Positions 936-39,949 of a stretch of 64,000 nucleotides of DNA are shown here, in pieces. Where the stretch lies: assembly GCA_044892525.1 (NCBI GenBank), contig CM097885.1:207142001-207206000 (forward strand), written 5' to 3'. Every line of letters begins with the position of its first letter. Within the stretch, counting starts at the first letter, position 1. Below the pieces are notes generated by a model that searched no databases, had not been told where the DNA came from, and saw nothing but the letters and a program-made list of their open reading frames with translations. Origin of the DNA: Schmidtea polychroa (taxonomy: Eukaryota). A program made the position numbers and the translations under genes.

Positions 936-1025
936 ATTTATAGATTATAGACTATAGGTTACTTTTTCCGCTTTTTAACACAAATTTTCGGAATCGGCTT
1001 TATCTAGTGGTATTTGATATATAGT

Positions 1026-2174: not shown

Positions 2175-2267
2175 TATATAGTTGCCATGAAAATAAATGA
2201 AACAATCAAACTAAATATTAATAAAGGTTTTCAAAACTATATTAAATTTTTAATTTTGTGTAATCAC

Positions 2268-5200
2268 TTAGATTTGCTGAAATTTACATTCACTTGCAAA
2301 GTAAAATAATATTAAATACTTTAAGTCCCCATCTTCTCATTTTCAAAATCCAACAAAGTTCTAATGAGCAATTGTGACATCTAACCCAATTGCACCCACT
2401 GACTTTTTCCAGTAAAACTTTGCAATCCAAACACCGCATTACTTGTCCATTTTGTATTTTTGACTAGATAAAATGCGCTCAAGAAGAGAATTTGAACAAG
2501 GTTTACTTCAATATTTTTTAAAGTAACATCCAATAGCTGTTTGTTTTGATATTCTTTACAACTTTCATTCACATGAATAGCCTTGCATTCAGTGCAGTTT
2601 TTAATTCCGCACTTTCTACATGTGAACTCTTTTTGTTTCGATTCGAACTCATAAAATGCTTCACAATTTGGAGTTTGACATTGGTAAAATGAATTTATTG
2701 ACTTTTTGGAAAGATTAGCGAATTTTGTTTGATATAAATTAAGTTCATCTTTGGATATTATCTAATAAAATAATAATTAATGGAAAGGTATTGCTATAAC
2801 AAATACGCTCTGGATTTCTCTATCTGTGATTATATCATTACAGTATAACTTTGGACATATAATCGGCACTATATTCGTTGAGTTAATGTGTCCATTGAGG
2901 CATGGCCTAGAGAATTTTTACAGATTATTTTTTATTATGTACAATTAAAAATAATTATATTATAGATTAATTTGTGAAAAAATTTCAAAAAATAGAAAGT
3001 TTTAAAAAAAGTGAGATAATAATAATTTACAATAAACTAATAATATAAACATGAATATGGGAATGTTTAATAAATAAATGACATGGATCAATAATATTGC
3101 TTGAAAAAAAAATATTCACTTTTTTTCCTGATTAGAATTTTTTAAGTAAATATTATATAATGCATATTTCCAAATTTTAAGTAATTGAAACATTATTTTA
3201 TAATTATCAATATTAAGTAATGAGGACTATAGAGCAGTTTGACATTGAAGAACCATGTATTACTTTTACTGACCCTGTGATGAAATTAAAAAGTCAAACT
3301 GTGCTGGTGCCTTTATTTTATCGTCAACGCTGATTTTTTTTTCCCAATTGTCTGTATCTCCATTTCCTTTTAAACTCTAGATTAATATTTGGTTTAGTAG
3401 TGCCTCCACTTTATAGATATTTGCATATTTATTTATGTAGATATATTATATTATAATGTACTAAAAGATATAGAAAACAAAACACTTGTGTAAATAATCA
3501 GAATAAAAGAAATACACAAATTAAAAATAAATAGAAACAAGAACAGGCCCGTTCCTGGCGGGGGTGTAGAAGGTGCCCCCGCACGAGAGCGGCCAAGTTG
3601 AAGGGCGGCCGCCGACCTGCTATTATTATATTTTTAAAAAATTGATTTTAAATAATCTAACAAATAAAGTATGCATAATAAAAGTAAGTTTTACTATTTA
3701 GAAATTTTATTATGAATAAGAAAATATTAAACCTTCTTAGATGTCAGAAAGAAAAAGAAAAAGGAAATCTGGTGCTTATTATCGAAAAAAAGGAAATAAA
3801 ATTAAAAGAAATAAAAAAACTAAGTGGATGTTTAATACAGTTTTTGGAATCCTCAAAAAATTCATCTGCGGCAAGTACGTCAGAAAGAATGCAGTAAAGC
3901 GTTGGGTAATTTAAAAAAATTTTTAAATGAGAAACGAAACGATGCCAGTTTTAATGAATATATAAGTGAAGCTACAAACCTTGCACAAGTTATTGATGTA
4001 GAAAATGAATTTCCACAAACTCGTATAAGAAAAAGACCTCGTCAATTTTTATATGAATCATGTGATGAGTTTGTAGAACATTCTAAACAAAACTTTAAAA
4101 TTAATTTTTATTTTCTTATTATAGATAGAGCGAATAATTCTGTAGAGGAAAGATTTACGTTATTAGATCAATGTAAATATATATAAGGTTTTTTTTGTAT
4201 ACTTTCCACTCAATAGATTCAGATATTTTTAAAAAATGTTGCTTGGATTTGGAAATTTTTCTACAAATAAATGTTAAGGACATTATAGAAAAAGACGTAA
4301 ATGGTTTTGAATTATTTAACGTAATATTAAGTTTTAGGAAAATATTTTCCACCGCGGGAAAGCCTGTAATGACTTTGAATTACATCATACAAAACGACTT
4401 AATATCCTCATTTCCCAATTTTTCTAGGGCGTTAAGAATTTTTTAACGCTGGCTGTAACTGTAGCATCTGGAGAAAGAAGATTTTCTAAGCTAAAATTAA
4501 TAAAAACTTATCTCAGGTCATCGATGTCAGAAAAAAGGCTAACCAATTTTGTACCAATCTTGTTATCGATAGAAAAAGATATTTGTGAGAATTTAAACTT
4601 GTCCCAAGTAATTGATGATTTTGCTTCAGCAAAAGCAAGAAGAGTAAAATTGTGAAATCTTTTTTTGGTACTTTGTTTTATATGAAACTAATAATTTTTT
4701 TGTTTATTGGAATAAAATATTAAACCATACTTGTTGATTTACAAATTTTAGTTACATTTTATAAAAAAAATTATTAAAAAAACTTTGCTTTTTTAATATA
4801 GCATGTTGTCATAAATAAATAAAAACTTTTTCTTCACTCATTTTTATTAGGTTTTCATATTCTATATTCAATTCCATTAGGGTTAATTTTTACAAGATAA
4901 TAATCCCCATCAGGTGATCCGCACATCAGCAAATTCTAATCAAAAAATTAAATTAATAAGGGCACCAATATTGTTTTTTCACCTAAGCGGCCAGCAACGC
5001 AGGAACACACTGAACAAGAATATAAAGAAGAGATGAAACTCAGCCATAAAATTTCTACTAACTATTCAGAAGAAACTTTTCATCCAGCACCAGTATCACA
5101 GCCAAATAATTATTACCTTCAGATGGAATTCAGATCCCGACTTCACTATTTTATAATTAATAAATTTTGGAAGTTATTAATTATAATGTTTTTCATAGTT

Positions 5201-7906
5201 AAAATAATTGTAGTTAGGGTGTAGAAAAATGACGGGTAAAGAATTTGAGAGGGGTGAGTTTATGTAAAAATTTTTAAGAAAATATAAATATGATATAATA
5301 TAATGTTGCAAGTGTGAGCTTATATAAAAATTTATAAACGAATACAAATGTAAATAATGTAAAAAATATAAATAAATATAAAATACAGTAATCGCATATT
5401 TTCTCATCTACCAGCTATATGTCATATATATTTCAAATTTTTATACCGAATTTAACTTACCTTATATCAACTCTTTTAAATTAATTAATCAATTCTTTTT
5501 TACTAGTTAAAAGTCGCTAATTATATGAAGGTGTTGGCTATACCCACCTGAGCGTTATATGCGCAAAAATACAGTACATAAATTTAATCAAAATTTTCAT
5601 ATGTTAAAATTACCTGCAGAACAAATGAGAACAACTACGTAATTTGATCCCATCTCCTTTACATATGCTCATACTACATAACATGCATTCAAAGACAACT
5701 TGATTAAATAAAAGGTCAACGTTTTCAAGAGCTTGTAAAGAGTTTCTCGTATCTAATTTATTTTTTTCATTCAGAAATTGTGATGCCACTCTAAGTTCCG
5801 TCTGATAGAAAAAAAATAATTAAATAAAAATAAAAAAATAATTATAAGAACTTTTTTTTCCTATTTCACCACTGATTTCTTTTCCACTGTATTTATTAAA
5901 AAGCTTGAAGACTTCAAGCTTTTTAAAAAAAAATAATTATAATAAAAGTTCTAAAAATATCCATTAAGCATGTCAACATATGTTATGTAATATGAAAATA
6001 TGAAAACGTTAACAAAGTTATTTTAAAAAGTTAATGCCAACAGAAAATATTAAAAATTAATTTTTGCATTTAAACTATCCTAACTCTTTTCAGAGCCAAA
6101 GTTTTAATGAAAGTATAAACAACTAAGACTTTTTTTTCAAGCATCTTACAAAATTTTCAAAAGATTTGCAATTTTTAATTATTGAAATCTAATTGTCCTT
6201 GTACTTTTTCAAATTCCCCTTTATTTTCACTTTTATTTGAAAATGGAACTTCTAATCTTGACTAATTTTAATTTAATATCTAATTAATTTGATCAATCAC
6301 AGTGAATTTAACAAATAAATAAATATACAGGGTTTATCAGATCATAAGACAACATTTAGTTCAATTTAGATAAATTGCAAGTAACTAAATTAATTAACGA
6401 TTTTCTGTTTTTATAAGTTTTCTTTTATTTCGACACTTTCCGATCATAATTTGATAAATCCATTCTTACCATGATCTTCCCCACCATCTCATTTTCAAAT
6501 TTTAATTCGATGAGTTCTTGATTTTGAATTTTCAAAATTCTTTGTTTAATTATTTGGAAAAAATTAATAGTTGGAAAGTGAATCAGTGTTAATGGAAGTT
6601 ATGTTGAGAATTAAATCTTAAATATCTGTCTTGTTTATCATACAGAATTTGGTTACACTAACTTTATTATTTCTATTCAAGTCTAAGGACTTTGCATACT
6701 CACAGCGTAATTTATGACACCTGGTGTATTTAAAGTACGATTGTATTTGTAATTATAGAACTTTTGTGAATCGGGCTTGTATTGAATTATTTATTTTACT
6801 TTTATCAGTAATTTGTTCTATCTGCCTATATTACAGACTCTAGTTTTGTCCATGGCACACATTTTTATTATATGTTAGTTTAATATATATCATTGTGGTG
6901 ATTATTTATTGTCATTCAGATTCGTATTATTTGCGGTTGAAAATTTTATTTTATTTGATAATATCTTTATAATTTATCAAATTGCCTGGTAAATAAAATA
7001 TATATCGAAAACGAACCCGGCAAATGATATCTTTTTGCCTTTTACTTATCGCTTGATATTGTGAACATGTGTAAAATTTGTGAGGAGCTTTGCATTTGAT
7101 GCAATTGTACAGACTACAAATATGACACTGGTATTGAACATCGTGATCTGAATAAATTATTGATCCGTGACATTGAGGCAGAATACATTTATGAACTCGA
7201 TCAATTAAGCCAATACAAAGATTTTCATATTTTTCTATCAAATCATCCGCTAGTATCTGAATAATTAAGAATTAAGAATACGTATTTTATGTTTTATCAT
7301 ATTAAAGGAGAGCCCTCTAAAATGTAGAGCACTAGGCCCCTCCCCTTCACCAGCGATTTCAAAATTTTCAAAAATTGGATTGTCCATTTAATAAAGAACT
7401 TTTATTACTTTTTCCAATTAAAGAGTTCCCTTTCATTATATGGTTATGATTTTGTTTTCGGTGTATATAGTTTTATAATCCTACAATGTAGAGTATCGTA
7501 AGACGATTATTTCTCATTAAAGAACTATATATAATATATATAACCATTACAAGCTTTGTGATACCCAGTGCAAATTTCAATAGTAGACTAGTTTCGAGCT
7601 TTTGGCTCTCATCAGTACTATGCAGGAGACGCGAAGATTTCTCTTCGCGCCAGGTAAGTATACAATATTGCTGATTCAACTCTATAGCATACTTTCCCTG
7701 GTACACTGGAAATCACATTACTTGCAAATTAGCTAATTCACAGAAAAATATCTGTAAACTTGAAAACATGGCGGATGAAAATCACCTCTGGAGACAAAAA
7801 AATAGTCTATACACAGAAACTGTGCATCCGTAAACCTTTAGCATTTTTAACTTGTTATGGTGTAAAATATTTTTTACGGATATCTAACATTTGAATAATC
7901 TAAACA

Positions 7907-7985
<79 letters not shown>

Positions 7986-9350
7986 GAACTTTTTTTACCA
8001 ATTTCACTACTAATTTTTTTTCCATTGAATTTATTAAAAAGAGCTTGAAGACTATAAATCAGTAAATATATCAAAACATCGATATATTTACTGATTTATA
8101 GTCTTCAAGCACTTTTTAATAAATATATATAGTTTTTATTGTACTTCCTAGCCATGCCTTTCTTAATCACGCACTTGTATTGCACATGTCTTTCTTAATC
8201 ATAGTTTATAAAAATCAATAATAAACTTTGGTTAATACATTTATTTAATAATGTAAATTATGGAAGATTACACAAATCAATGAATATTGTTAAAAATGTT
8301 ATCAATAAAGTTCCATCTCTTGAGTGATAGATTATTTCCTCAATTGTGTAAAGAAAATGATGACGAATTCGGACGACTTATCTTACATACAGAAGTAAGA
8401 TGGATATCGAAAGGAAATTGTTTTAAAGGATTTTATGCAATATTTGATACAATTGTGATTTATCATTTAAATTGACTATTAGAATAACTTTTAAAATAAT
8501 TTTTAAATTGAATTTTTTAAATTGAAATTTTTAAAATTTAAAATTGAAAAATTAAACTAGCTTTTTAAAAAAAGTTTTATTAGTAAATAATTTTTAAATA
8601 AATATATTTTAAATATCAAATTTTAATAAATGATTTTGAAAATATTTTATTCAACGCTGAAAATTTGTTTGAAAATTATACAATATTTCATTAAATAAAT
8701 ACTTGGAATTATGTCGCTAACTTTTGAACCGGATTTAAAAAATAATTTAGAAGATGTGCTAATAATAATGTGCATTAATAATAATGTAAATAATAATGTA
8801 AATAATAATAATGTGCTAATATGATAATACGATTCAAAGACTTGCATGATAATACCGGATTGGATAATTAATCCATTTTTATCGGATGTAGAAAGTATCA
8901 GTTAAAATTTAAAAGAGCAGTTTATTAAGCTACAAAATGACTGAATCTAAAATAATATTTAATCAATGTGATTATGATGTTTTTTGGGTCAGTTTCGCTA
9001 TCAATACCCTCCTCAGTGGAAAGAGGTAAAATTACTCATCACAGCATTTAGTAGAAAAGGGTTTTAGTGCAGTAACGCATATATTAAAAAAATCACGACA
9101 CTAACACGTCTGATTTGAGAATCGCGAATTAATACATTACAATTTGCAATTGGGCATTTGATTTTCGGATGAAGATTTTTTTCCAAATAATCACTTACGC
9201 ATTTCCTATAAATAAATTGTAAAGATTATGAGTTTCAAAATAAATGATAAAACAATACCAACAAAATGAATGATTGCATTTCAAAATCGATAATTCATTT
9301 TGTTCTTTTTCGCTTTTGCAAATTAAGCATTCATTATAAATATTTATCAT
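2268..9350 (-). CDS. HOIL-1/RBCK1-like RBR E3 ubiquitin ligase, gene A (RING1-IBR-RING1-IBR-RING2), 8 exons, about 375 aa
   Basis: Hand-spliced exons, all GT-AG with the frame conserved: 9350-9259, 9205-9106, 7256-7017, 5801-5614, 2906-2807, 2761-2507, 2463-2320, 2276-2268 (1128 nt, no internal stop). Motifs: CLIC..CNHSFCWKC..CPIANC; IBR CILPQC..CHIC..CIKCKAPH..C; CMLC..CSHLFCRPC..CPKLYC; IBR CQTPNC..CRKC..CTECKAIH..C; RING2 MRCLDCKVLLEKVSGCNWVRCHNCSLELCWILKMRRWG. Human HOIL-1 has MRCPQC...KKDGCDWIRCTVCHTEICW...RWG. The last 9-nt exon is the least certain. Confidence 0.85.
3544..5012 (+). mobile_element. Internally deleted hAT transposon (Tip100/ZMYM1-like) in intron 4 of gene A
   Basis: Imperfect TIRs (CAGGCCCGTTCCTG; reverse complement of the right end is CAGTGTGTTCCTG). 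Exact 8-bp TSD AACAAGAA at 3536-3543 and 5013-5020. Frameshifted transposase C-terminus ending in a hAT dimerisation motif (FPNFSRALRIF..VTVASGERRFSKLKLIKTYLRSSMS) at about 4400-4655. Confidence 0.85.
5843..5955. repeat. Small dispersed foldback repeat, copy 1
   Basis: TATAAGAACTTTTTTTTCC..TTTCACCACTGATT..ATTTATTAAAAAGCTTGAAGAC with an internal hairpin. Related copies at 7981, at 13814 plus 29918, and near 63305. Confidence 0.6.
7912..7980. repeat. (TA)n microsatellite
   Basis: Uninterrupted TA dinucleotide run. Confidence 0.95.
7981..8125. repeat. Small dispersed foldback repeat, copy 2, with an approximately 45-bp-stem hairpin
   Basis: TTTATTAAAAAGAGCTTGAAGACTATAAATCAGTAAATATATC, a short loop, then GATATATTTACTGATTTATAGTCTTCAAGCACTTTTTAATAAA. 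Confidence 0.7.
8255..9100 (+). pseudogene. Decayed Buster/ZBED5-type hAT transposase fragment in intron 2 of gene A
   Basis: LCKENDDEFGRLILHTEVRWISKGNCF matches the hAT LHTEVRWLSRG motif. Downstream frames are broken by stops and frameshifts. Confidence 0.7.
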
Positions 9351-9790
9351 ATCTAAATAAATTGAAATGCTACGCTTTATTTCGATAATATTAGTAAAAT
9401 ATATAGTTTTTTTACTGTTCAAATTTATCAATTATACGGATCTTAATTTAAATAAATCAAGGTCAATTAATGATTATTATATCAAATTTACAATAGTCAA
9501 TAATTAATCCTAATTATATGAAAATGAATTTTCAAATTATGAATTTTCAAAATGATTTTCAAATGCAATCATTTATTTTGTTTTAGCATGATTTATTTAA
9601 TCAACATTATAATATTTATTTATAATATTGTGATTAAAATCTAAAATATGAAATTGTTTAAAAGTAATTCAGTGAAATATTTATCTAACCTTGAATTTCA
9701 AATTCAATTTGAATTAGATCCTGATTAAAATAAAATTGATTTCAAACTAATTTGTTATTTATTTTCAGTTGAATATTAATTGATTTAATA
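9351..9790. promoter_or_regulatory. Candidate bidirectional promoter and 5' UTR region between the two RBR genes
   Basis: 440-bp gap between divergent ATGs (9350 minus, 9791 plus). Each ATG is preceded by an acceptor-like sequence (TTTAG|at-ATG; TTTTCAG at 9762-9768 followed by an in-frame stop), which suggests 5' UTR introns. No specific motif was identified. Confidence 0.45.
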
Positions 9791-12700
9791 ATGGCATTAA
9801 AAAATTGTCTTGGATGTTCAGATGGTAAATTAGAAAGTGAATTGGTTAAGTTAAAATGTGTACATTCCTATTGCTGGTAAGTCTGAAATTTTATCTTTAT
9901 TACGATTACAAATCTTGTGTTCATATTAATTAATCTAGTAAATGTTTAAAATTATCAGTTTGTATTGTTATGGACAAAAATTCTACAACATCTATATCAG
10001 ATAAGTTAAAAATTAAATTTTAAATATTAAAAATTATAATTGTTTTTAACGCTAATGAACCTTAATAATTGAAGTCAGGTCCGTGGAAAATTATATTATG
10101 GTTTATTAATGGCAGTTGCAGAGGTTAAGCAAGATTGTTAGTTGTATTGATTGTGATATAAATAAAGGCAAGTAGTTTAAAACAAGTAATTGTTGTTAGA
10201 TAGTAGATGTGGATCTTACAGGAGGAGTGATTGGCGCAAACATTTTTCATACTTTTTTTTAATTTTGCAGCCCTTTATTACTACTTATAAAATAGATAAC
10301 TTTTAGTGTTATAAAATAATTATCGAAATAATAATTTCCACAATAGAAAGTTTGGTCTTTTAGACTAGTAAGACACTTACTGTCCTGATTGGTTGATTTA
10401 TAACCTAAGACCTAAAAATTCCCCCTCTACTTGATAACCTGTTTCCATTGCAGAAAATGATTCAAAAATACAAATTACAATACAAAATAAGTATAAATTT
10501 TATTGTATGTGGAAACCCCAAGTGATAAATGAGAATTAGTTTTTCCTCAGAATCGAATTAGCTGAAACAGAGCTTTTGATCATGTTTTTATGAAAAATGT
10601 CGCTTACCTAATTGTTTTGACTTGAGAGATGTTGTTTGCCATATTTAATTATTTTGTTTTTTGAAAATGAGTAGGAAAGAAACGCAGGGACACTAGTAGC
10701 TAGTTGCCAGTTTGATCAATGACAGGAAAGAGAAAATTTATAAAAAGTAGAACTAATCAATCACTAGTGTACCTGGCGTTTGGGATACCTACCATATAAA
10801 GCAGTGGTCTTCAAACTTCAAAAGCTCGCAGAACCCTTATGTGAAATGATGCATTACAATATAGATTTTATTTTTAAGTTTTTTTATGAAATTCTTGAAA
10901 TTTTTATTTATGTTTTTTATGAGAAATGAAAAATTTCTTTTAAATTATTGATTTTTTTTGGAACCCTGGGGTTCCGTAGAACACAGTTTGAAGACCATTG
11001 AAATGATTTTTAAAGTATAGATCAAAACTGTATTATAAAATTATTTTGAAAATGAATAAATTATTTTGTGTTGGGTCTTATTTGATTTTTTGAAACAGAG
11101 CATTAAGAGTCAACGTCTTTAGCGACTTTACGATGATAACTTAACAAATATATGAATATATTATAACTTAATTTCCTGATAATGTACCGTGCTATTCAAA
11201 AGTCTCCGTCTCTAAAACTAGAATAAAACAACAAAACACAATATAATTTATACTCACATATTTATACTTATTGACATTAATTATTATTCACTGATTAACA
11301 ATATGGGGGAAGAAGCTGGTGATGTTAAATTTTCGCTTGCGGATAGAGTGTTTATAGTCAGTCATGTAATAGTGTGCCAGAGTAGTGCTGAAGCTTGCCA
11401 AGGATTTCAACAACATTTCAATCGTGCACCAGAACAGCAGTGTAATACTGGAAACAGAAGTTTGAAGAAACTGGAAACTTATCCACTAGGTTCCGATTAG
11501 AAGACCGTCTAATGAAATCATGAAGGTGGTATATTTTGTAAAAGAGAATGATGGCACAAATCAACGAGAAACTGCACGAGTGTGCATGACTTCACAAACT
11601 TCTGTTCACAAATATCTCAAGGAAGAAAAAATAAAACCTTTCAAATATTCTTTTAATCAAATATTGGGAGAAGATAATCCCGATAGAAGGGTTGAATTAT
11701 GTTCTTGGATAGTCAACAAAAACAGTGTTAATTTCCATAGAAAAATTATTTTCTCAGATAAAGCTTAGTTTTATCTAAATGTTCTCGTACGAAAACACAA
11801 TCTTCTTTATTACGCTAAAGAGAATAAACATCAAAATTTTCCACAGTGGTGGATTGGTAGTAGAGGACTAAAGGAATGGCCACCAGGATCTCCAGACCTC
11901 ACGATATTGGACTTTTGGCTATGGAGCTACATCAAAGATCGTGTTTATGCCATCCATAACAATTATACAACGCTCAACGAACTTGAAGAAGCAATTTCAT
12001 ATGAATTAGTAAACATCAATTAAGAAGTCGTCTGTAAATGTTATTCAAGCTTCAGGAAACGATGCAATCTCACTTTGGAGCAAGATAGTGAACATTTTGA
12101 AAAGTTACTATGAAATTGCTTATTATTTACTGTTATTCTTTCTTTCTGTTATTGTGTTTTGTAGTGCATTAAAGTAACTCAATATATTTAGTTCGTTCTT
12201 GCTGTTGTTTTATTTTAGTTTTAGAAACGGGGACTTATGAATCGCACAGTATATTTTACAAATTTTCTTTTATCTTTAGGGAAACATTTACAGAGTTTCT
12301 ATCCCTTTAAAAGGCTTGCTGAAGAAAAAAGAACTCGCAGCAACTAATTTTTATAATTCTTTTTTCCATTTTAAGAATAAATAAAAACAATTATACATTA
12401 TGAATTTTTTTAGACATTTTATGTGTTATATTGCAGTAATTAATAAATAAACTGATATAAAGTGGACCCTAAGGTCAGAACGCCCCTTATATAAATTGGG
12501 GTTGTCGGTGAAATTAAATGTTACCAATTACTTTGTTTAACAACAATAACGAACTCAAAACGATATAAACTTTTATTGATTAACATAATTGATTTCCAAT
12601 TTACAGCGTTATCAATAATTTAATATTACAATAATGACTTGAGTTCTAATTGCATGGCACGTTTACAATATAACTTGGAATTCATAATCACTTGACTGCT

Positions 12701-26765: not shown

Positions 26766-26821
<56 letters not shown>

Positions 26822-29800
26822 CATTAAAATTTCCATTTAAATTTTCATTATAAATTACATTTCTCAAAAAAGTTGGTGGTTATTCAATCTTTTGATAATA
26901 AATTTAAAAATCTTACTTTAATTTACTTATTTAATTTAAAATTTGAACCATTGGATACTTAATTTTAAATTTTGAACCTTAATTTACTTATTTAAAATTT
27001 TTAACTTTAATTTACCTAATTATTCTTTATTTCTTAATTTTACACCATAATTTACTTAACAACTAAATATAATCCTTATTTTCATATTTAACCAATAATT
27101 TCATGTGGTCATCTGGTTGTAAGTGTTTGGTATCTAGTTGACAGTGCTTAGTACTAGGTAAGTTATTTGGTTGTTAGTACTTGGTTGTATGTACTTGGTA
27201 TCTAGTTGTTAGTAACTAGTTGTAGGTAATTAATGCTTAGTAGTTGGTAACTGGTTGTTAGTACTTGGTATCTAGTACCTAGTTAGCTGGTTGTAGCTAG
27301 TTAATGGGTAGGTTGGTTGTTAGTACTTAGTATTTAGTTGGTTGATAATGCTTAGTACCTGGTTGTTGTTGGTTGTTAGTACTTGGTATCTAGTACCTAG
27401 TTGGTTGGTTGTTAGTACTTAGTATTTAGTTGGTTGATAATGCTTAGTACCTGGTTGTTGTTGGTTGTTAGTACTTGGTATCTAGTACCTAGTTGGTTGG
27501 TTGTTTTTGGTTGATAGTACTTGGTATCTAGTTGTAAGTATTTGGTATCAGGTAACTGGTTGTTAGTATCTAGTTGTAGGTTGTAGGTACTTAGTAGTTA
27601 GTTGATGATGCTTAGTACCTGGTTGATGTTGGTTGTAAGTACTTGGTATATAGTACCTAGTTGGTTGGTTGTTAGTAACTAGTTGTAAGTACTTGGTAGC
27701 AGGTAACTGGTTGTTAGTATCTAGTTGTAGGTTGTAGGTACTTAGTAGTTAGTTGATGATGCTTAGTACCTGGTTGATGTTGGTTGTAAGTACTTGGTAT
27801 ATAGTACCTAGTTGGTTGGTTGTTAGTACTTAGTATTTAGTTGGTTGATAATGCTTAGTACCTGGTTGTTGTTGGTTGTTAGTACTTGGTATCTAGTACC
27901 TAGTTGGTTGGTTGTTAGTAACTAGTTGTAAGTACTTGGTAGCAGGTAACTGGTTGTTAGTATCTAGTTGTAGGTTGTAGGTACTTAGTAGTTAGTTGAT
28001 GATGCTTAGTACCTGGTTGATGTTGGTTGTAAGTACTTGGTATCTAGTTGATAGCTGGTTGTTTTTGGTTGTAGGTACTTAGTAGTTGGTTAATAATGCT
28101 TAGTAACTGGTTGTTGACGGTTGAGTGCTTGGTAGGTGGTAGCTAGTTGGTTGATTGTTTTTGGTTGTTAGTACTTGGTATCAGGTAACTGGTTGTTAGT
28201 ATCTAGTTGTAGGTATCTGGTTGATGTTGGTTGTAGGTACTTAGTAGTTGGTAATTAATGCTTAGTACCTGGTTGTTGTTGGTTGTTAGTACTTGTTAGG
28301 TGGTAGTTAGTTGTTAGCTGGTTGTTGTCGGTTGTTAGTACTTGGCAGGTGGTAGTTAGTTGTTAGTACTTGGTAGGTGGTTGTAGGTTGTAAGTAGTTG
28401 GTATCAGGTTGTTAGTAACTAGTTGTAGGTATCTGGTTGGTAATACATGTTCGTAAGTTACTGGTTGTTGGTACTAAGTTATTGGTTTTGTTGTTGAATT
28501 ATTATTAAAATTTGTCTTTGAAAAATATTTCATAAAAATTTTCATTAAAAATTATCTTAAAAATTTCCATCTAAAATTATCATTGAAAAATATTTCATAA
28601 AAATTTCCATTAAAAATTACCATTGAAAAATAATTCATTAAAAATTAACTTAAAAAATATTTCATAAAAATTTTCATTAAAAAATTTCAATTCTCAAACA
28701 CCTTCTATTATTTCAACTTTTTGTTAATAAATTTTAAAATCTTACTTTAATTTACTTTAATTTACTTATTTAAAAATTATTACTTTAATTTACTTATTTA
28801 AAATTTTTTACCATTGATTACTTAATTTAAAAATTTGGACCTTAATTAACTTTAATTTAATTTTTAGAACCTTAATTTACTTTAATTTAAAAATTTGGAC
28901 CATTATTTACTTTAATTTAATTTTTAAGAACCATAATTTACTGTAATTCAATTTTTAGGACCATAATTTACTGTAATTTGATTTTTTAGGACCATAATTT
29001 ACTGTAATTGAAAAATTTACCACGTTTTTAGTGTAGACCACCTATTTCTCAGGACCAAGGAGACTCACCTCACTATAGTCTAAAAAATCCTTGGCTTTTT
29101 TAGTGTAGACCAGCTTTTTGTATTGAAAATATCCTGAGACCTTAAATTACCATGCTTTTTTAGTGTAGACCAGCTTTTTGTATTGAAAATATCCTGAGAC
29201 CTTAAATTACCACGTTTTTTTAGTGTAGACCACCTATTTCTCAGGACCAAGGAGACTCACCTCACTATAGTCTAAAAAATCCTTGGCTTTTTTAGTGTAG
29301 ACCAGCTTTTTGTATTGAAAATATCCTGAGACCTTAAATTACCATGCTTTTTTAGTGTAGACCAGCTTTTTGTATTGAAAATATCCTGAGACCTTAAATT
29401 ACTACGTTTTTTTAGTGTAGACCACCTATTTCCCCAGGACCATCGTTTTATTGTATTGAAAAAATTTTATTTGTATTGAAAATCCCAGGACCATCGAGAC
29501 CCCCTCACTATAGTCTGAAAATTCCATGCTTTTTTAGTGGTAGTCGGATTTTTGTATTGAAAAAAATTTTTTGTATTGAAAATCCCAGGACCATCGAGAC
29601 CCCCTCACTATAGTCTGAAAATTCCATGCTTTTTTAGTGGTAGTCGGATTTTTGTATTGAAAAAAATTTTTTGTATTGAAAATCCCAGGACCATCGAGAC
29701 CCCCTCACTATAGTCTGAAAATTCCATGCTTTTTTAGTGGTAGTCGGATTTTTGTATTGAAAAAAATTTTTTGTATTGAAAATCCCAGGACCATCGAGAC

Positions 29801-31806
29801 CCCCTCACTATAGTCTGAAAAATTGCATAATCAAAAGTTGCAACAAAAAAAAAGTTGCAACAACCCCCCCCCCCCCCGGGGGGGGTAATTGTTGCAGTAC
29901 GCTACTAACTACCTACTTTTATTAAAAAGAGAGCTTAAAGACTATAAATCAGTAATATATCGATGTTTTTTTATACTCACGAATTTTCGGAACTGCAATT
30001 TCATTTTTATATTTTTAGTTGAATTTGTAAATTGTTCTTACAATTTCGACAAATTTTCCTGTGACAACAATCATGTAATAATTACGTCATTTTACTTAAA
30101 CATTTACTAATAATTTGTCGCTTCTTAATTGAAAAAATGAGTTGCAATTATTTGGACTTTATTTCCAAGCAGAACAGTTCGGGAGTATTTTCTATACAAA
30201 ATCATAAGCTTCGAAAGCATAAATGAAAAAAATTTAAAAGTAATTACTTAACTAACTTAACGACCGCCTTATATAATAAGTTTCGTCCAATCAGGACTAA
30301 GTGGTGTTGTTTTTTGTCTATTTTTCTTTATTTCCTATATTTTAATTGTTTTTATTAGGTATTATTTTGTTTTATTTTGCTACCTTATTGTTTTATTTAT
30401 TTTCTATATTTTGGTATAATTTTGCCGATTTTCCGTTAATCTTTTTGTGTGTAATGACCTATTTCTATTTTTTTCTAATTTTTATTAATATTTTATGTCC
30501 TTATTTTGTGTTTTTTCCATATTTATGTTTTGTTCTTTTAATTCTTATTTTTATTAAATTATTTTTTTTCTTTTTGTCTGTTGTCTAGGGTTAATATCTT
30601 ATTTCTGTATACTTAGTTCTGTTTCCTGTGATTCTTATTTTTAACTGTTTTCATCTTATTTTATTATTTATTTAAATTTTCTTATTAATTCTTTCAAATC
30701 CTTATTTTTAGTTTGTTTTTACCTAGTTTATTTAATGTTAAATTTATTTTGTTTATTCGTTTCTACTTTCGACTCTTTCCTATATTCATTTCAGTCCAAC
30801 ACCACTTTCCAATTAAGCCAAACACATATGACGTAACAAAGAAATTTTAACGAACAGAGACATGACTCATCATTATACTGAACAAAGACATTTTACGGAA
30901 TAAAGACATGACTCATCATATTTTGAATTTCCAAAGGTTAAATAAAGTCAGACCTTCAAACAAAAGTATCATTCGAAAGATCTTGAAGATCTCTATCCAA
31001 TGGTTATATTCTCGAAGGTCTAAGGTGTAAAACCTTCAAAGGGTCAAAAACATTCNNNNNNNNNNNNNNNNNNNNNNNNNNNNNNNNNNNNNNNNNNNNN
31101 NNNNNNNNNNNNNNNNNNNNNNNNNNNNNNNNNNNNNNNNNNNNNNNNNNNNNNNNNNNNNNNNNNNNNNNNNNNNNNNNNNNNNNNNNNNNGAATATGA
31201 TGGTCATACCCTCGAAAGTTTATGGTAGGTCATTGATAATAATATTGATAATAATAATAATAATAACTCCCGCGCGCGAATTAATAACTTTAAATCTAGT
31301 AATGATATCTCATTAAAAAGGTCTTGCACTGGGCTTTAAAATAAGACATCTATCAATAAAATTGGTTGATAGGAACAATAACTTTTGGTTTGCCAAAAAG
31401 TAGATCACCCCAGAAACAAAGACATAATTTTTAAAAATATTTTTACGATGAGTCATTGTCTTTGTTCTAAAAATAGATGTCTTTGTTCTAAAAGGATGAG
31501 TTGTCGGTTATTATGTTTTAAAAATTTGAACCCCTTGAAGGTTTTTTTAGTTTCAGGTTCCTTCATAAACCTTTGAAAGTATGACCATGATACTTACATA
31601 AAAAATACCTTTTGTTTGATATATATTGAAATTTTTGAACCTTGGACCCTTCAACCTTCGAACTCATCATCAAAAGTCTTTTTGAATGATATATAACTTG
31701 TAAGGTTTGAAAAAACATTTAAGTTTGAACACCTTTGAAGGTTATTGACCGACCATAAACTTTCGAGGGTATGACCATCATATTCGCCTTTCAAATACCT
31801 TTTGTT

Positions 31807-31888
<82 letters not shown>

Positions 31889-34800
31889 AAGTTTGAAAAA
31901 ATTCGAATGTTTTTGACCCTTTGAAGGTTTTACACCTTAGACCTTCGAGAGTATAACCATTGGATAGAGATCTTCAAGATCTTAAGAATGATACCTTTGT
32001 TTGAACGTCTGACTTTATTTAACCTTTGGAAATTCAAAACATGATGAGTCATATTTCTTTGTTCGATATGATGAGTCTTATGTCTTTGTTTGTTAAAATG
32101 TCTTTATTACGTCATTTAAAACGATGAGTCATATGTCTTTGATATGTCATTTGTTCCGTGAAAATGTATTTGTTTAAAAATGGCCTAAAATCGACTTTGA
32201 CAATAAACCGTCCTCAAAATGACATTGATCCTAAAATTAGACCTTAGGTTTCGTTTACCGTGACCTTAAAATTTCTATGACTTTAAGTGGACCTTAAGAA
32301 AAATGCATTAGTTACGTCATATGTCTTTGTTCCTTGGTCCACATGTTACCCTACTAATTTGGAAAATATTTCCTAGGTTAGCATTCCAATTGTGCTTCAT
32401 TTAAAGAGATTATTACTGTTTATCATTTATAATTGTTAAATTATTATTAAAAATTATTTTCACTCTATTAAAAAATTCTTTCGTAATTTTTGCAAGAGAG
32501 GGAATAGTGGGTAAGTGTCTTAATTATTTTTTTTAATCTTCATAATATATATTTAATTATTTAATAAATATAAAATTTAAAGTAATTTACATTATTTTGA
32601 AATAATTTTTCATTAAAATCCACATTTAATTCTAATTAGAGAATAATTACTAAATAATTTAAAATATGAAATTTTCAGAATTTGATGAAAAATCCGTACA
32701 ATAATTTGAAAGCAGTAATTACTCATTTTTTGTATATAAATACTGCCAATACACATAAAATTTTATATTTTGTACCGGGATGTATGAATATTTTTGATTA
32801 TGGATTGTTAGATATTTCTTTTATATTATCGCGATTATTTTTTATTGAGTATAATAATTGTTTCTTTTCTAAAATTAAATGCTTGTTTTAAGAAAATGTA
32901 TTTTGTGAATGTTATGTCGTTAGTTTGGAATATTTTATTACACTGATCATTATGCTATGTTTGTAATTTATTTATTAACGTTTTTATTCAGGTGCTCTCT
33001 GGTGATGATATCGCAAAATATGAAAATGCTGTTTTGTGTAAAACTAATATATTTTTTTGTTTATTGAAAGAATGTAATAATCCTGTATCATATACGGATG
33101 CGAATATTCAGTATGAGTGTATGAAGTGTTCCCTTATCAATTGCATCTCATGTAAAGCACCACATAACCTTATTAAGTGTGCAGATTTTAAATCTAAAAA
33201 TAAATCACAACAAACCGCCATTTCTGAGGTTTATTTATCGGTTATTTATCATTTATTATTATTCATTTCTAATAGACTGAATTTAAAAATGCCGGTAGAA
33301 TTTTAGAAACCCGCGTGGCAAATAAAAATAGAGAATCACTTTTAGAATACGAAGAAATCAATCTATTGAAGAACGATGAAATATTTACCTGTTTATGTGA
33401 TACACAATTCGGGAAAGGAAAAGGCATTAAATTGCAAAATTGTTTTCATAATGTTTGCTCGTAAGATTTTTTGGTCATTTGAAATTTATTATATAAAAAC
33501 TCAATGTCTAATAGTGTATGTATATATGTATAAAATATTTTTTAAAAAATAATAAATAAAATAACTAAGAACCGTAACAATTTAACATGGAAAAAATTTT
33601 CACCGTTTTTCACTGACACCAAATTCACGAGCTGCTGCACAATGGTTGTTAGCTATTAAAGTTTAAATGCAACATATGATGTCCACTTCTGTTTAATGGC
33701 CCTAAAAATGCATTTTACTGACTTCGATAAGCAAAATAAATAAACTGATTCAAGCAATTCAATTGGTATAAAGCAGGGTTTCGAACCCAAACCGAACCTG
33801 AACCTGAACCCAGCAAAAATTCGGTTCAGGTTCAATTTTAATAGTCATTATTTTATACATAGATAATAAATAGAGATTGTGTAAAATTGTTATTAAGGAT
33901 TTGTGATACTCATAACTATATAAAATTATAATATAAATAAGTCATTCATTCATAATAAATTACATAAACTATAAACTATAAATAATTTATTTATACAGAA
34001 ATTATAAATTATTTTAGGGCCTATTTATAATAGAAACATTTATGGTAAGTATAAATTAACACCATTTTTATTCAGTTACTATTTTTTTAAACTAGCTTAA
34101 TTTAAATTTGTTTTAGCCTGTAGATTTTGGGAAATCCAGTAAAAATTTTTTTTCAATATAATTTTATCAAAGATCAGTCTACATGTAGCAAGTGCTCTTT
34201 TTTTATGAAAGGTAAGTATACTGCAAATATAGGTCGCCATATCAAACGAAAACATCCTGATGAACATCGAACTATTACTGAAAGGATGAATAGTCAACCA
34301 TCTACATCTGAAACCATTAAAACCTTTAAACGAAAGATGAAAACTTAGTTTCCATTGAAAATTATTGTAATTTAATCAAAATTAATATGCCATTAAAATT
34401 TTTCATTGATGCCTGCGTTAAATTAGTTACAGTTAATAGACGACCGTTTACAATTTTCAGTGATTCTGGGATGAGCGATATTATAGTACCGATAATGAAG
34501 AAACTCAAATTGACTGTAAATTCAGAAAACATCAAAGATCTGGTAAATAATAAGGCAAATGAAGTGAAAAATATAATTAAAACCGAGATTAAAGAAAATT
34601 AATATCCATAAAAATCGACTCAGCATCCTGGCTTGGTAGAAGCGTAATTGGTACAAATGCCCAGTATATTAGCAATGGAAAAATTAATTTGAGAACATTG
34701 GCAATGTATTAAGTCAATGACCAGAAAACACCAAATTACATTAAAAATATAATAGTCAAAGTGATCGAATCTTATGGCATAAAATCAACTCAAATTTACT

Positions 34801-37451
34801 CAGTTACATCTGATAATAGTAGAAATATGATTAAAGCGACAATACTCTTAATAAATGAATTTGAAGTTTCTGACCTTGAAGAAGTGGAAGACAAAGAAGA
34901 TGAATTATTATGTCCAAACGAAGAAGGATTAGAACTATTTTCTAGTTTATATTCTAATATCATTCACTCTAGGTGCATAACTCCTTCTCTCCAGTTGGCA
35001 GTGTATGACACAATATCTGCAGTTAATCATAATATTACTAAATGCAAAGATTTTTCTAAGAAGCTAAGGGTGCCTAATAAATCTAATAGATGCTGAACTA
35101 AATATGGGTGACCAAATGTGGGAATTTATTTCAGATTTCGTTGAGATTTTCGAGGCCGTTAAAAATATAACATTAAAGTTGTAAAATGAACAAATGAATT
35201 TGGGAGATAATTGAAGGAAGTTTAGCTCGGAATCATGGCAGTATTTTTTTAACATTTTCCGTGAAAGTGATTTAAATATATCTCTACTATTCTGCAATAG
35301 CGACATTTTTAGCCTTTATTATAAAATTCTATTGTCTTTCAATTCTGTAAAACGTTGAAGACCTTTTAGTATCAAATATTCAGTAAAGATTTAATTCTAT
35401 ATTTAAAATATAAACAAGCACACTCATTCCTTTTAATTACAAGACTTTTTTCTCATTAGTCAATTTTGATCATATCAATACTTGTTTTTATTATAAATTA
35501 TATTCAAGAAAAAAATAATTTGAAACTATGGCACGAGATTATAAGAATCATTGTGATTGTTACAAAAGCAGTAATAGTATAAAATTATGATTTCTTTGTT
35601 GCAGCATAAATTAAATGTTAAACAAGTGATAAATAAATATTTTCACATAAAGGTTTATCTTATAATTTATTTGTTCAACATTTAATTTATAATGCAACCA
35701 AGAAACTATCATTTTCTACATTCAAAAGACAGGGAATGTTAGCATATGTATGATTCTAACAAGAGTTTAATGTAGAATTTCATATTTCTATTTTATCTTT
35801 GTATAAAATACTTTTCCGTATTAAGTATTAAAAGAATGCTGAAGATAGGCTTGCCAACTCTCCCGTCTCCCGGTTAACTATGATCCGGGAGATGTAAATC
35901 TCCCGTCTTTCCGTTTTTACAATATTTTACAATTTTTCAAGAAAAAAGTGCAGTTTTTGAAGTTTTAACTTTTATTTGATTTCTCTAAAATCAACAAAGC
36001 TATTGGAGTCTGGCCGACGACAAGAAAAATACAATTTTAAAAACAAACAAAAATAGCATGATTTGTAAACTGTACTATATAATATGTAAAAATAATTGTT
36101 TTGTTTAAATCTTCATATAGTTAAAATCACTAACATGTGTAAACCTAAAAAAGTGAAAAAACACCTGTTATATTATTTCTTAAGCGTTATACTGTTCGCA
36201 ATTTTATAATCTCCCGGGTTCGAGGTTGTGGGAGTTGGCAACCCTAGCTGAAGAATTAAAATATTTGAGAAGTAATAAATCCAATTAATACTCCAAGTGT
36301 AAAAGTGTTTATTGAAAGATATGAGAATTTAGTTGTTGTTTGTTCTCATGCATCATTTAGAATTACATTTCCAGATATGGAGCATGCTTTTAAACTTTCA
36401 TTAAAATCACCATTTGTTATTAGTGAAAGTGATTATTGGTGAATAAAATTATTAAAGTTTACAGAAGATAATACAAACGAACAATTTGCTATAAGTATAA
36501 CTGATGTTTAAAATATAGAATTCGAATATTCTTTTGAAGATGATACTTAATCTGAATTATGACTTTTAATGATAATCAATCCATCACTATTTAAAGAAGT
36601 TAAAATTCTAAATAATGAATTGGTTAAAATAAAACTTGTTAATAACATTTCATAATTCAACTTTGATCACTCCTAGATCCTAGTGACCTGGATTCCAAGT
36701 TGAGACAGTTGACATCATAGATGGTGCAGTCTGTTTTTGTATTTTTGAATTTGTTTAATAATAATATAAATCATCAGAAATGATAAGAAAATATAATTTA
36801 TTTCACTTTTAAGAGATTGTTTAAAGAATTATATCAATCGTTCTGACCGAGTACCAGTTAGCTGTCCTTTTTGTAGCTTAGTCATGAATGATAGGGAAAT
36901 TAAAAGTGTAAGAATATTTATTTTAGAAATTGTAAAAACCTTTAATGACAAAAAATCAGGTTTTGACGCCGATCGATTTCGAGATGTATCATAGACGATG
37001 TAAGAATGCTGCCATAAAGCAGATCGGTTGTGTTTTTCAATGCAAACAGCCGAATTGTGACAATTATTGGAAAATTACAAGCAATACAATAAAGGAATTC
37101 AAGTGCACAAAATGTCAAAAAGTGAATTGCATTGAATGTGAAGCTATTCACACTGGGGAAACTTGTACGTCATATAAAATTAGAAATTCCTCAAAACTAT
37201 CCACTGTAATATTTCCGATCTATTTCTAAAAATGTATCATCATTTAGGAAACAAAAAAAAAAGATAACATCATGACATGTCCACAATGCAAAACGTTTCT
37301 GTCAAAAAATGAAGGTTGCAATTGGATTCAATGTCAAAGTTGTCAAATAGAACTATGCTGGATTCGTAAAATGCTTCGATGGGGTCCAAATGTATTTATT
37401 CATTTCTTTGTAATGATGTGTTGTTAGCAATTGCTATTCTACCGTATTTAG
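9791..37451 (+). CDS. HOIL-1/RBCK1-like RBR E3 ubiquitin ligase, gene B (RING1-IBR-RING1-IBR-RING2), 8 exons, about 371 aa
   Basis: Hand-spliced exons, all GT-AG with the frame conserved: 9791-9876, 13248-13347, 32992-33228, 33276-33460, 36814-36907, 36960-37205, 37248-37391, 37428-37451 (1116 nt, no internal stop). Intron positions and phases match gene A. Motifs: CLGC..CVHSYCWLC..CPFQLC; IBR CLLKEC..CMKC..CISCKAPH..C; CLC..CFHNVCSDC..CPFC; IBR CKQPNC..CTKC..CIECEAIH..C; RING2 MTCPQCKTFLSKNEGCNWIQCQSCQIELCWIRKMLRWGP. The last exon is the least certain. Confidence 0.82.
10802..11000. mobile_element. Small Buster-like hAT MITE
   Basis: TIRs CAGTGGTCTTCAAACT / AGTTTGAAGACCATTG and GGAACCCTGGGGTTCC subterminal motifs like those in the intact Buster at 43940. 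No matching TSD was found. Confidence 0.55.
11187..12249 (+). mobile_element. Decayed, internally deleted Tc1/mariner-superfamily element (DUF4817/Tc3-like) in intron 1 of gene B
   Basis: TIRs of about 45 bp (CCGTGCTATTCAAAAGTCTCCGTCTCTAAAACTAG and CTGTGCGATTCATAAGTCCCCGTTTCTAAAACTAA) with TA TSDs. Fragments KFSLADRVFIV, RKIIFSDKA and WPPGSPDLTILDFWLWSYIKDRVY. Confidence 0.85.
13968..14400. repeat. 100-bp subterminal tandem repeat, left arm
   Basis: CAGACTATAGTGAGGGGGTCTCGATGGTCC recurs at 13968, 14068, 14168 and about 14317. The mirror array lies at about 29480-29820. Confidence 0.9.
14530..15480. repeat. About 30-bp AT-rich tandem satellite, left arm
   Basis: Repeated AAATTACAGTAAATTATGGTTCTAAAAAATT variants. 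The mirror copy at about 28800-29015 is much shorter. Confidence 0.9.
15755..16570. repeat. Degenerate CAACTAG/TACCAAGTACT satellite, left arm
   Basis: Strand-biased, C/A-rich modular repeats. The expanded mirror copy lies at about 27110-28490. Confidence 0.85.
17422..20981. mobile_element. TA-flanked inverted-repeat sub-element inside the left arm
   Basis: Ends CTCTTAGTCTATCCGACAG and TGTCGGATAAACTCAGAG, both flanked by TATATA. 15-bp subterminal repeats (GTAAGGGTACTGGTC) at about 17455-17555. Family unknown. Confidence 0.55.
21534..22443. repeat. Non-palindromic AT-rich spacer of the giant foldback, with decayed direct repeats
   Basis: Arm symmetry stops at 21533 and 22444. The motif ATTTAATTTTAATTGTATTTTTATAAG..CAT.TATTTGA recurs near 21555, 21722 and 22012. 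Confidence 0.7.
23022..26296. mobile_element. Mirror copy of the TA-flanked sub-element inside the right arm
   Basis: Ends CTCTGAGTTTATCCGACA and TGTCGGATAAACTCAGAG, flanked by TATATA. 15-bp TACCCTTACGACCAG repeats at about 26165-26260. Confidence 0.55.
27110..28490. repeat. Expanded GTTG/TAGTAC satellite, right arm, with higher-order units
   Basis: CAGGTAACTGGTTGTTAGTATCTAGTTGTAGG recurs at 27549, 27700 and 27943. Units of about 90 bp occur at about 27320-27500. Confidence 0.85.
29025..29820. repeat. Right-arm subterminal arrays (about 192-bp unit x3, 100-bp unit x about 4)
   Basis: GTGTAGACCACCTATTTC recurs at about 29031, 29223 and 29415. GGACCATCGAGACCCCCTCACTATAGTCTG recurs every 100 bp from about 29488. 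Confidence 0.9.
31056..31192. other. Assembly gap (N run)
   Basis: Run of Ns. Confidence 1.
31809..31884. repeat. (AT)n microsatellite
   Basis: Dinucleotide run. Confidence 0.95.
33774..35330 (+). mobile_element. Decayed, 3'-truncated hAT transposon with BED zinc finger, in intron 4 of gene B
   Basis: TIR CAGGGTTTCGAACCC followed by GAACCY subterminal repeats. BED-like CSKC..RHIKRKH (34127-34348) and VTSDNSRNM (34761 ORF). Multiple stops. Close relative of the copy at 60444-62981. Confidence 0.8.
35846..36246. mobile_element. hAT MITE (TAGGGTTGCCAAC-type TIR)
   Basis: TIRs TAGGCTTGCCAACTC and GAGTTGGCAACCCTA. Exact 8-bp TSD GCTGAAGA at 35838-35845 and 36247-36254. Confidence 0.88.
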
Positions 37452-38655: not shown

Positions 38656-39949
38656 TCTTTTTACAAACTAAATTTCAAATTCAAAAATTCGCCCCAACTA
38701 TTCTCTTTCAAACAATTCTTGACAAGAAAGACTCCAGAATTCTAACAACACTTTTTACCAAAAAAAAAATCAATCTAACATATAAAAATCAAAAACATAC
38801 CCATTTCTTGCCGAAATCGTCACCTCCAGTCAGAGGTAAAAGTCATTCGCCCTCTGACTGGTCGAAACACTAGTTGTGGAGAAATTAAGAATAAACGTTA
38901 TCGGTGCCTTGATGTGTTGTAAGGAAAATTACAATTTAGGGAGATGTAATTGACTAGGAAATCACAAATGGGACAAACTGTTGCATGTGTTCATGAAGAA
39001 TCATCAGTGATTGACATTTTGATGATAATAATGTTAGCGAAGAGAAAACAATTGAAAGAGCAAAATCCAACTATTGAGAGTATATTAGTAAAATTTGGGA
39101 ATATATTTATGGCGTTGAATTTTGATATCGGGTTCCCAAACTTGGTTGGTCATGAAATGAAAATGAATGGAGCACCAATCATGCATGCCCTTTGAATACA
39201 ACAGATGTTTATTAAAAGTAAAACAGAGGTTTAGATAATAACGACCATATAAGCTGGGGTGAATCATAATTGCTCCATTATTTATTGTAGGAAAGCATTT
39301 TTGAATTAGAAATAAATTATTTTAGTTTATATTTGATGTCAGGAATCGAAAAATTCGTAACAATAAATATCTCATATATATATATATAGAAATGAAAGTA
39401 TATGTGTTTGTATGTTTGGATATATAAACTTCAATTCATGGGTAAAAGGTAGTCAAATGTATTCTATATATTCTATATTCAAATGTTTACTATACTAAAA
39501 TGTCTAAATTTTTATCCCAATAAATAACATGAAAATTTGCTTTTTAGGCGATTTTAGATTTTATATTTTATCAATTACTTCATGAATTTTATTCAATTAC
39601 TATTTTGGCATTATTTGTGGCTCTAGGGTCGGGGTGACACTAGTGGGGGATGTAGATGCATGGTCAACGATAAACCTTGTCATGTCAACTGTAAGTCTCC
39701 ATATTGCACTCCTGATAATAGAATATTATTTCAACAAAATATGGCTTGAAGTTATACAATTTTTATTTACTGGTGAAATTTATGAACAACTGCTATATTT
39801 TTATGGAAATATATTGGAGGCTTTTATTTTTATTTTTTATTACTAAGAATTTGAAAGAATTTATAATTCAAATGAAAACAAATGAGCAGATGAAATAATT
39901 TTTGTGCTTACCGCTTAATGAATGATTTATAAAGCCCCGATACGATTAA

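Follow-up and report, generated by a model that had tools for sequence, protein, structure and literature searches.

Two predicted RBR genes and their exons

The window analysed here is a stretch of 64,000 nucleotides from Schmidtea polychroa (assembly GCA_044892525.1, contig CM097885.1, positions 207,142,001 to 207,206,000 of the forward strand). It is AT-rich, with a GC content of 22–37%, and contains three runs of N. Two neighbouring paralogues lie in it head-to-head: gene A occupies 9350–2320 of the minus strand and gene B 9791–39749 of the plus strand. Both are predicted to encode proteins with the domain order RING1-IBR-RING1-IBR-RING2. RBR ubiquitin ligases, to which this order points, have been described with a single RING1-IBR-RING2. 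An earlier reading of the letters (the sequence-only reading) had placed the pair at 2268–37451. Exons 1–7 of both genes do lie inside that span, but gene B has an eighth exon and runs to 39749, so that the right end given was too short.

Exons were discovered by reading the six frames for Cys-rich open frames and by tblastn with their translations. Splice sites were set by hand on the raw sequence and the coding sequences were then assembled; family and domain searches were run with single exons or database homologues as queries. The model of gene A has seven exons and 373 amino acids (aa), with the reading frame open to the last exon and no stop reached. That of gene B has eight exons and 404 aa, and ends in a stop. 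All junctions of both genes are GT-AG, and the frame is kept throughout. Moreover, both models are collinear with P0012 and P0166, two intronless, transcript-like homologues, with zero indels at the junctions. The N-terminal RING1-IBR is referred to below as unit 1, or the distal unit, and the one next to RING2 as unit 2, or the proximal unit.

Gene A begins with exon 1 (9259–9350), which carries the ATG and the first half of the unit 1 RING1 (C1–C5) and ends in phase 2 inside C5-x2-C6. Exon 2 (9106–9205) supplies the second half (C6–C8) and a phase 0 donor, and exon 3 (7017–7256) supplies unit 1's RING1-IBR helix together with its IBR. The linker helix and the first half of the unit 2 RING1 are on exon 4 (5614–5801), which is homologous to an amphioxus exon beginning AELRRRE. 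The second half is on exon 5 (2807–2906; exon reading and spliced model), and the unit 2 IBR with the IBR-RING2 helix is on exon 6 (2507–2761). Exon 7 (2320–2463) encodes RING2, with the catalytic Cys in the motif SGCNW (within 2377–2433, minus strand). A donor follows RRWGLK at its end, and no tail exon was found when one was looked for at window positions 1–2319; hence, gene A is 3′-incomplete at the left window edge.

Gene B opens with exon 1 (9791–9876; ATG and first half of the unit 1 RING1) and exon 2 (13248–13347; its second half), both taken from the exon reading and the spliced model. Intron 2, of 19.6 kb (13348–32991), separates these from exon 3 (32992–33228), which encodes the unit 1 IBR. 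The linker helix and the first half of the unit 2 RING1 lie on exon 4 (33276–33460), the second half on exon 5 (36814–36907), the unit 2 IBR on exon 6 (36960–37205), and RING2, with the catalytic motif EGCNW (within 37278–37334, plus strand), on exon 7 (37248–37391). A donor immediately after RWGPN leads to exon 8 (39627–39749), which encodes GRGDTSGGCRCMVNDKPCHVNC..., a HOIL-1-type tail (GDTSGGCRC...) with a putative Zn2/Cys6 cluster, followed by the stop. The intron position ahead of exon 8 is also present in amphioxus, tick, and mite. An alternative C-x2-C-H exon was sought after gene B, and none was found.

The start codons lie 5–7 residues ahead of RING1, and an in-frame stop is present 7 codons upstream of the gene B ATG. 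The 440-bp spacer between the divergent start codons (9351–9790) is presumably a shared promoter region. It contains, at 9555–9584 on the plus strand, a weak RING1a-like remnant (IFKCNHLFCF; tblastn E 0.9), which may be a chance resemblance or a leftover from the inverted duplication by which the gene pair arose.

In the unit alignment, none of the eight RING1 and eight IBR ligand columns varied in either unit of A, B, or the homologues, and the RING1s of both units retained the C-P motif at C7. Pfam IBR matched all four IBR exons at 16–26 bits against a cut-off of 24.3 bits (26.3 bits for gene A exon 6 and 20.5 bits for gene B exon 3), and gene A exon 1 matched zf-C3HC4 at 20 bits. IBR_1 matched the RING2 exons, at 31 bits for gene B, above the cut-off, and at 24 bits for gene A. 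Scores near the cut-offs are as expected, since single exons were scanned. The unit 2 RING1 of gene B departs in two places: its first ligand pair is C-L-C for C-x2-C, shorter by one residue, and C7 and C8 are separated by x2, not x4. The shorter C7-C8 spacing is not a sequencing slip, because the related protein P0008 has it too.

In both units of both genes, the introns fall at the same three places, in phase 2 inside C5-x2-C6 of RING1, in phase 0 after RING1, and in phase 0 after the IBR. The sequence-only reading had described two complete RING1-IBR units with their Cys/His ligands, a HOIL-1-like RING2, and these three intron positions in each unit. All of this was borne out, with 16 Zn ligands present per unit and HOIL-1 as the top match in the PDB (see below). 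Its statement that no UBL or NZF region is encoded also held. No NZF motif was found in the six frames of the window, and the N-terminal domains of amphioxus RBCK1 (PH, LTM, UBL, and NZF) gave no tblastn match in it; the stop 7 codons before the gene B ATG and the 440 bp between the starts agree with this.

Intron 2 of gene B contains one of the runs of N (31056–31192), 1.8 kb ahead of exon 3, which touches no exon. The end of exon 2 and the start of exon 3 are both in phase 0, and no residue is missing at their junction when compared with the gap-free gene A, P0012, and P0166. A further RING1-like exon was sought between 29917 and 32991, and none was found. P0005, a predicted protein of a related species that is 73% identical to residues 1–141 of B, joins a B-type RING1 to IBR1. 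The continuity of the scaffold across the gap, and with it the link between exons 2 and 3, is putative.

Two repeat structures were observed in the same intron. A 148-bp inverted repeat (30908–31055 and 31905–32052, 96% identical), the left arm of which abuts the run of N, is probably a repeat element and the cause of the gap. A diverged palindrome of 16 kb (13868–29917, centre at about 21535–22468) lies entirely within the intron. Its collinear arms are 71–99% identical and rich in tandem repeats of about 30 bp and about 100 bp, and its GC skew is mirror-image, from -0.3 to -0.38 on the left and from +0.35 to +0.44 on the right. The palindrome may be a foldback element or an old inverted duplication; it is not an assembler hairpin, since the arms are too diverged.

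Could the layout be an artefact or a product of decay? The first RING1 of gene B (9791–13347) might be foreign, brought in by a wrong scaffold join across the gap or the palindrome, or one or both genes might be unexpressed pseudogenes. The 19.6-kb intron with its gap and palindrome would fit such an explanation, as would a gene A with no tail exon in the window, the C-x-C anomaly of gene B, and the fact that the genes of this species are known here from genomic sequence alone. Against it, gene A has the same five-domain order inside 7 kb without a gap, and the open reading frames (ORFs), ligands, and splice signals are all intact. Unit 1 of B, at 44% identity to that of A, has diverged as far as the remainder of the gene (40%), and is therefore no stray copy of recent date. 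In the related species, P0005 links the B-type RING1 with IBR1, and the divergence of the palindrome arms speaks against a hairpin created by the assembler. We consider this explanation very unlikely.

Kinship with HOIL-1 and spread of the tandem layout

When the exons were searched against all PDB sequences by phmmer, HOIL-1 was the top match for all four IBR exons: E 3e-10 for gene A exon 6, 4.5e-7 for gene B exon 6, 4e-6 for gene A exon 3, and 0.03 for gene B exon 3, for which it was the sole PDB match. The RING2 of gene B matched human RBCK1/HOIL-1 at E 5.8e-12, the next family being ARIH1 at E 4e-4, and its tail exon matched the C terminus of HOIL-1 only (E 5e-5). A and B have the features of an RBR ligase, that is, the RING1-IBR-RING2 order, the Zn ligands, and the catalytic Cys in RING2, and they share four intron positions and phases with the RBCK1 gene of Branchiostoma. 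Judged by their RING2 and IBR, which are closer to HOIL-1 than to any other RBR, the two predicted proteins belong to the RBCK1/HOIL-1 catalytic subfamily.

At the end of the HOIL-1 RING2 is a Zn2/Cys6 cluster with the spacing C-x19-C-x-C-x6-C-x3-C-x2-C, and in the human protein the terminal H510 contributes to the active site (PMC9834252). The tail of gene B has six Cys arranged as C-x19-C-x-C-x6-C-x3-C-x4-C; the first spacings are identical to those of the human protein and the last is x4 compared with x2. The closest relatives of gene B likewise vary at the last spacing.

LUBAC-type HOIL-1 (LUBAC, linear ubiquitin chain assembly complex) has an N-terminal LTM, a UBL that binds HOIP, and an NZF that binds M1 chains. 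It carries out oxyester ubiquitination of Ser/Thr or of glucans, and is activated by M1 or K63 di-ubiquitin. To our knowledge, nearly all work on HOIL-1 has concerned its part in LUBAC. For every domain of the present proteins, human HOIL-1/RBCK1 (PDB 8EAZ, 8BVL, 7YUJ, 9EGV) gives the best match in both sequence and fold. It shares with them the helix-RING1-IBR-RING2 core and the catalytic motif G-C-[DN]-W with identical RING2 spacing, and with gene B the RWGP-x3-GDTSGGCRC tail, which in HOIL-1 forms the Zn2/Cys6 cluster. It differs in that A and B carry an extra RING1-IBR ahead of this core, and in that the last Cys spacing of gene B is x4 and its terminal His is missing. Moreover, LTM, UBL, and NZF are all unencoded in the window, which leaves A and B with no evident route into LUBAC. 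That they may be LUBAC-independent is a reasonable supposition from the missing domains.

Relatives were collected with a profile built from the four IBR exons, which was run over 1.84 billion representative proteins and gave 597 matches at E ≤ 1e-3, many of which contain two to five matched stretches. Architectures were called with hidden Markov models built from the window's own domains and checked with Pfam. Of the 64 complete RBRs among the 150 top-ranked representatives, 7 had the order RING1-IBR-RING1-IBR-RING2. The nearest named relatives of A and B are arthropod proteins, and examples with the tandem layout are Culex pipiens pallens XP_039438340.1 (407 aa, annotated as 'ranBP-type and C3HC4-type zinc finger-containing protein 1-like'), Parasteatoda tepidariorum XP_071039680.1 (spider), Dermacentor silvarum XP_037579011.2 (tick), and Orchesella dallaii CAL8131615.1 (springtail). 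By Pfam, UBL, NZF, and LTM were absent from all tandem proteins scanned, these four included, while the amphioxus protein P0040 has all three. The Culex and spider proteins differ from A and B in having no Zn2/Cys6 tail and GCDH instead of GCNW, and those of ticks in having two or three further N-terminal IBR-only repeats.

P0012 and P0166, whose sources are a Joint Genome Institute (JGI) contig and a Logan assembly, resemble A and B in build. They have 417 aa each, the same domain order and a HOIL-1-type tail, and fall in the same clade as A and B for both units; however, they are only 37–40% identical. P0012 is a single uninterrupted, transcript-like ORF on a 1427-nt JGI contig, and P0166 is also on a contig of about 1.4 kb. 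Contigs as short as these suggest that the tandem form is transcribed in relatives. A homologue search with P0012 as the query gave three matches, and one with P0003 gave only itself. The closest RBR fragments (P0002, P0003, P0005, and P0008) are UniParc entries.

It may be noted that the database predictions for the closest relatives are fragmentary: P0005 skips C3-H4-C5, and in P0003 the RING1b exon is replaced by unrelated sequence. The hand-built models of A and B are better than these two entries. The mite protein P0001, with RING1-IBR-RING2 twice, was not counted as a tandem form, because annotation appears to have merged two neighbouring single-RBR genes in it. In Culex (CM044972.1), the tandem gene (L002:2001-3351, plus strand) has a second RING/IBR gene (335 aa; L002:1-34, minus strand) just upstream in the opposite orientation, so that the pair stands head-to-head, as A and B do.

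The tandem layout is thus already widespread in annotated arthropod RBCK1-like proteins. The sequence-only reading had allowed that tandem forms might exist in other invertebrates, and had itself named a wide occurrence among annotated RBCK1 homologues as what would refute the proposal; the Culex, Parasteatoda, Dermacentor, and Orchesella proteins show such an occurrence. No description of tandem RING1-IBR RBRs was found in the literature searched, which did not cover most subscription journals, and we regard the layout as an unstudied variant that is not unique to the window. The proteins are already public; they make a neat case for the study of evolution and a fair starting point for biochemistry, not a singular discovery.

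Origin of the doubled unit and predicted roles of the two copies

The intron maps of relatives were obtained by placing the proteins back on their genomic loci. In Branchiostoma lanceolatum, the single-RBR RBCK1/SHARPIN gene (CAH1270746.1, P0040) has a phase 2 intron in HSFC/RECL and phase 0 introns after DREIRA, after the IBR helix, and after RWGPA, with a last exon of 78 nt. Its intron positions and phases are therefore identical to those of A and B, and its last exon is likewise short; it differs in having one RING1-IBR and in carrying Sharpin_PH, LTM, ubiquitin-like, and RanBP zinc-finger domains. Because this single-RBR gene has the same intron positions, the duplicated piece was an ancestral three-exon cassette (helix and RING1a, RING1b, IBR). 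Since the introns at both borders are in phase 0, doubling of the cassette leaves the frame intact, which makes this a model example of how domains can be duplicated by way of a phase-symmetric exon cassette. In the tandem genes of spider and tick, the three intron positions are repeated in both units, with matching exon lengths. Duplication of a three-exon cassette, as proposed in the sequence-only reading, is well supported, being strengthened by these genes and by the amphioxus gene, including its intron after RWGPx. The Culex tandem gene has one mid-IBR intron per unit instead, which suggests that its duplication was a separate event.

When RING1-IBR units were placed in a maximum-likelihood tree, the two Culex units were sisters (100/99), as were the two spider units (100/99), and the springtail distal and proximal units fell in separate pairs. 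In A, B, P0012, and P0166, the distal units formed a clade (100/100) on a stem of 3.9 changes per site, and their proximal units a clade of their own (94/99). A single origin of all distal units was rejected by the approximately unbiased (AU) test (p 0.00013, log-likelihood difference 62); this test excluded P0003 and the two very long distal units of ticks, and its group was defined only once the tree was known. Gene conversion between units is an alternative explanation for the spider and Culex pairings and could mimic the AU result. Tandem RING1-IBR probably arose by several independent duplications, and in the lineage of the window the tree places the duplication of the unit before the split of A and B.

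The proximal units are 34–38% identical to amphioxus and the distal ones 25–30%, while the identity within the clade is 40% for distal and proximal units alike. The distal unit is thus as conserved within the clade as the proximal one in spite of its long stem, which we take as specialisation, not decay. Canonical RBCK1 has a G-x-G-[IV] loop, which the proximal units keep and the distal RING1 lacks.

An AlphaFold model was used for P0012, which is 39.5% identical to gene B end to end (pLDDT 90.5). The order in this model is RING1-1, helix, IBR1; a 39-residue helix; RING1-2, helix, IBR2; and then further helices and RING2. The top PDB match by Foldseek was the HOIL-1 helix-RBR/E2-ubiquitin/ubiquitin transthiolation complex 8EAZ (E 2.5e-23; template modelling (TM) score 0.64–0.66, normalised to the target), where E2 is the ubiquitin-conjugating enzyme. 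RING2 of P0012 superposed on 9EGV with a TM score of 0.86 and a root mean square deviation of 1.8 Å.

Taken together, we favour, with modest confidence, the following reading. A and B would be divergently transcribed RBCK1/HOIL-1-type paralogues that lost LTM, UBL, and NZF and gained a second RING1-IBR by cassette duplication, with unit 2 and RING2 as the catalytic part and unit 1 as an accessory. The ancestral three-exon, phase 0-0 cassette would have been duplicated in tandem, and the LUBAC-tethering N terminus lost. The linker helix, RING1-2, IBR2, and RING2 with its Zn2/Cys6 tail would make up the working catalytic RBR; E2 charged with ubiquitin (E2~Ub) would dock on RING1-2 and ubiquitin would be passed to the GCNW cysteine, in the two-step transfer of HOIL-1. 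The distal unit (RING1-1 and IBR1) would be an accessory module, most probably a regulatory or targeting element that binds ubiquitin or ubiquitin chains. The RING1-IBR helix together with the IBR is a conserved allosteric ubiquitin site of RBRs (PMC9834252), and unit 1 would act through this surface, standing in for the lost NZF and UBL. The IBR-only repeats of the tick proteins fit with the IBR serving as a binding module.

Several points weigh against this reading. A and B are genes predicted from genome sequence, gene A has no tail exon in the window, and ubiquitin binding by unit 1 is a prediction. The P0012 model has a pTM of 0.64. The unusual C-x-C first ligand pair might weaken the Zn site of the proximal RING1 of gene B, whose tail, with x4 before the last Cys, has no His at the position of human H510. 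Lastly, the argument from E2 contacts, given next, concerns one position in five sequences.

Unit 1 could itself be a second site for E2~Ub, as the sequence-only reading had suggested; both RING1s would then dock charged E2s that feed one RING2, which would raise processivity. In both RING1s, the eight Zn ligands are complete and C7 lies in the C-P motif. The canonical E2-contact position is V284 of human HOIL-1, which touches F63 of UbcH7 (PMC9834252). The equivalent residue is L, L, L, L, and T in the proximal units, and I (A), G (B), N (P0012), L (P0166), and K (P0005) in the distal ones, that is, hydrophobic in 4/5 and 2/5, respectively. The I of gene A and the L of P0166 would suit E2 docking on unit 1, while the G, N, and K of the other three speak weakly against it. 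Also against it are the missing G-x-G-[IV] loop of the distal RING1, which sits on a very long branch, and the 39-residue helix that separates unit 1 from unit 2 in the P0012 model. In solved RBR complexes, moreover, it is solely the RING1 next to IBR-RING2 that brings E2 into line with the catalytic Cys (PMC9834252). Hence, a second E2 site is not favoured; we consider it quite unlikely, and less likely than a ubiquitin-binding accessory role for unit 1.

Another possibility is that unit 1 is an autoinhibitory pseudo-module that covers RING2 or the E2 surface until it is released. Autoinhibition by accessory domains is general among RBRs, as in the REP and RING0 of Parkin and the Ariadne domain of HHARI, and the preservation of unit 1 over a long divergence would agree with such a function. 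Foldseek, on the other hand, sets the proximal RBR of the P0012 model on the active, extended HOIL-1 complex. We therefore hold autoinhibition to be unlikely, and retain for unit 1 the accessory, ubiquitin-binding role.

In Drosophila, HOIP (LUBEL) is present, and HOIL-1L and SHARPIN are absent (PMC5090701). We put forward as a speculation, and one that we think doubtful, that the RING1-IBR cassette was doubled repeatedly in arthropods that lack a LUBAC-type HOIL-1, the added unit serving as an inbuilt sensor of ubiquitin or as a further allosteric site, by which the enzyme becomes self-sufficient. If true, the tandem proteins would form a distinct, convergently evolved regulatory class, the 'double-headed' RBR ligases. 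As HOIL-1-type enzymes without the LUBAC tethers and with a doubled E2- and ubiquitin-binding half, the predicted proteins would offer a natural experiment on what RING1-IBR does beyond E2 docking. They would also give a view of the HOIL-1 catalytic module, with its Zn2/Cys6 RING2, outside LUBAC.

Transposase-like frames and gaps elsewhere in the window

Two related open frames, at 34713–35093 (plus strand, within intron 4 of gene B) and at about 61300–61600, show a weak mutual likeness (e.g., HNITKC[KR]DF) and gave no Pfam match; by the appearance of their sequence they may be fragments of hAT-type transposases. A 290-aa ORF at 55081–55953 likewise had no match in Pfam. Two more gaps, outside genes A and B, lie at 50991–51272 and 56017–56183. 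An intact ORF of 438 aa at 42055–43371 (minus strand) is of the Tc5/pogo transposase type (Pfam DDE_1, 1.5e-20; HTH_Tnp_Tc5, 8.6e-13). Another intact ORF, of 648 aa at 44137–46083 (plus strand), resembles ZBED5/Buster-like hAT transposases; no identical entry was found by exact look-up. This second transposase is 94% identical to a Logan protein and 56–57% identical to aphid proteins, and its relatives occur in aphids, spiders, turtles, and fish, a patchy spread that is typical of horizontally moving elements.

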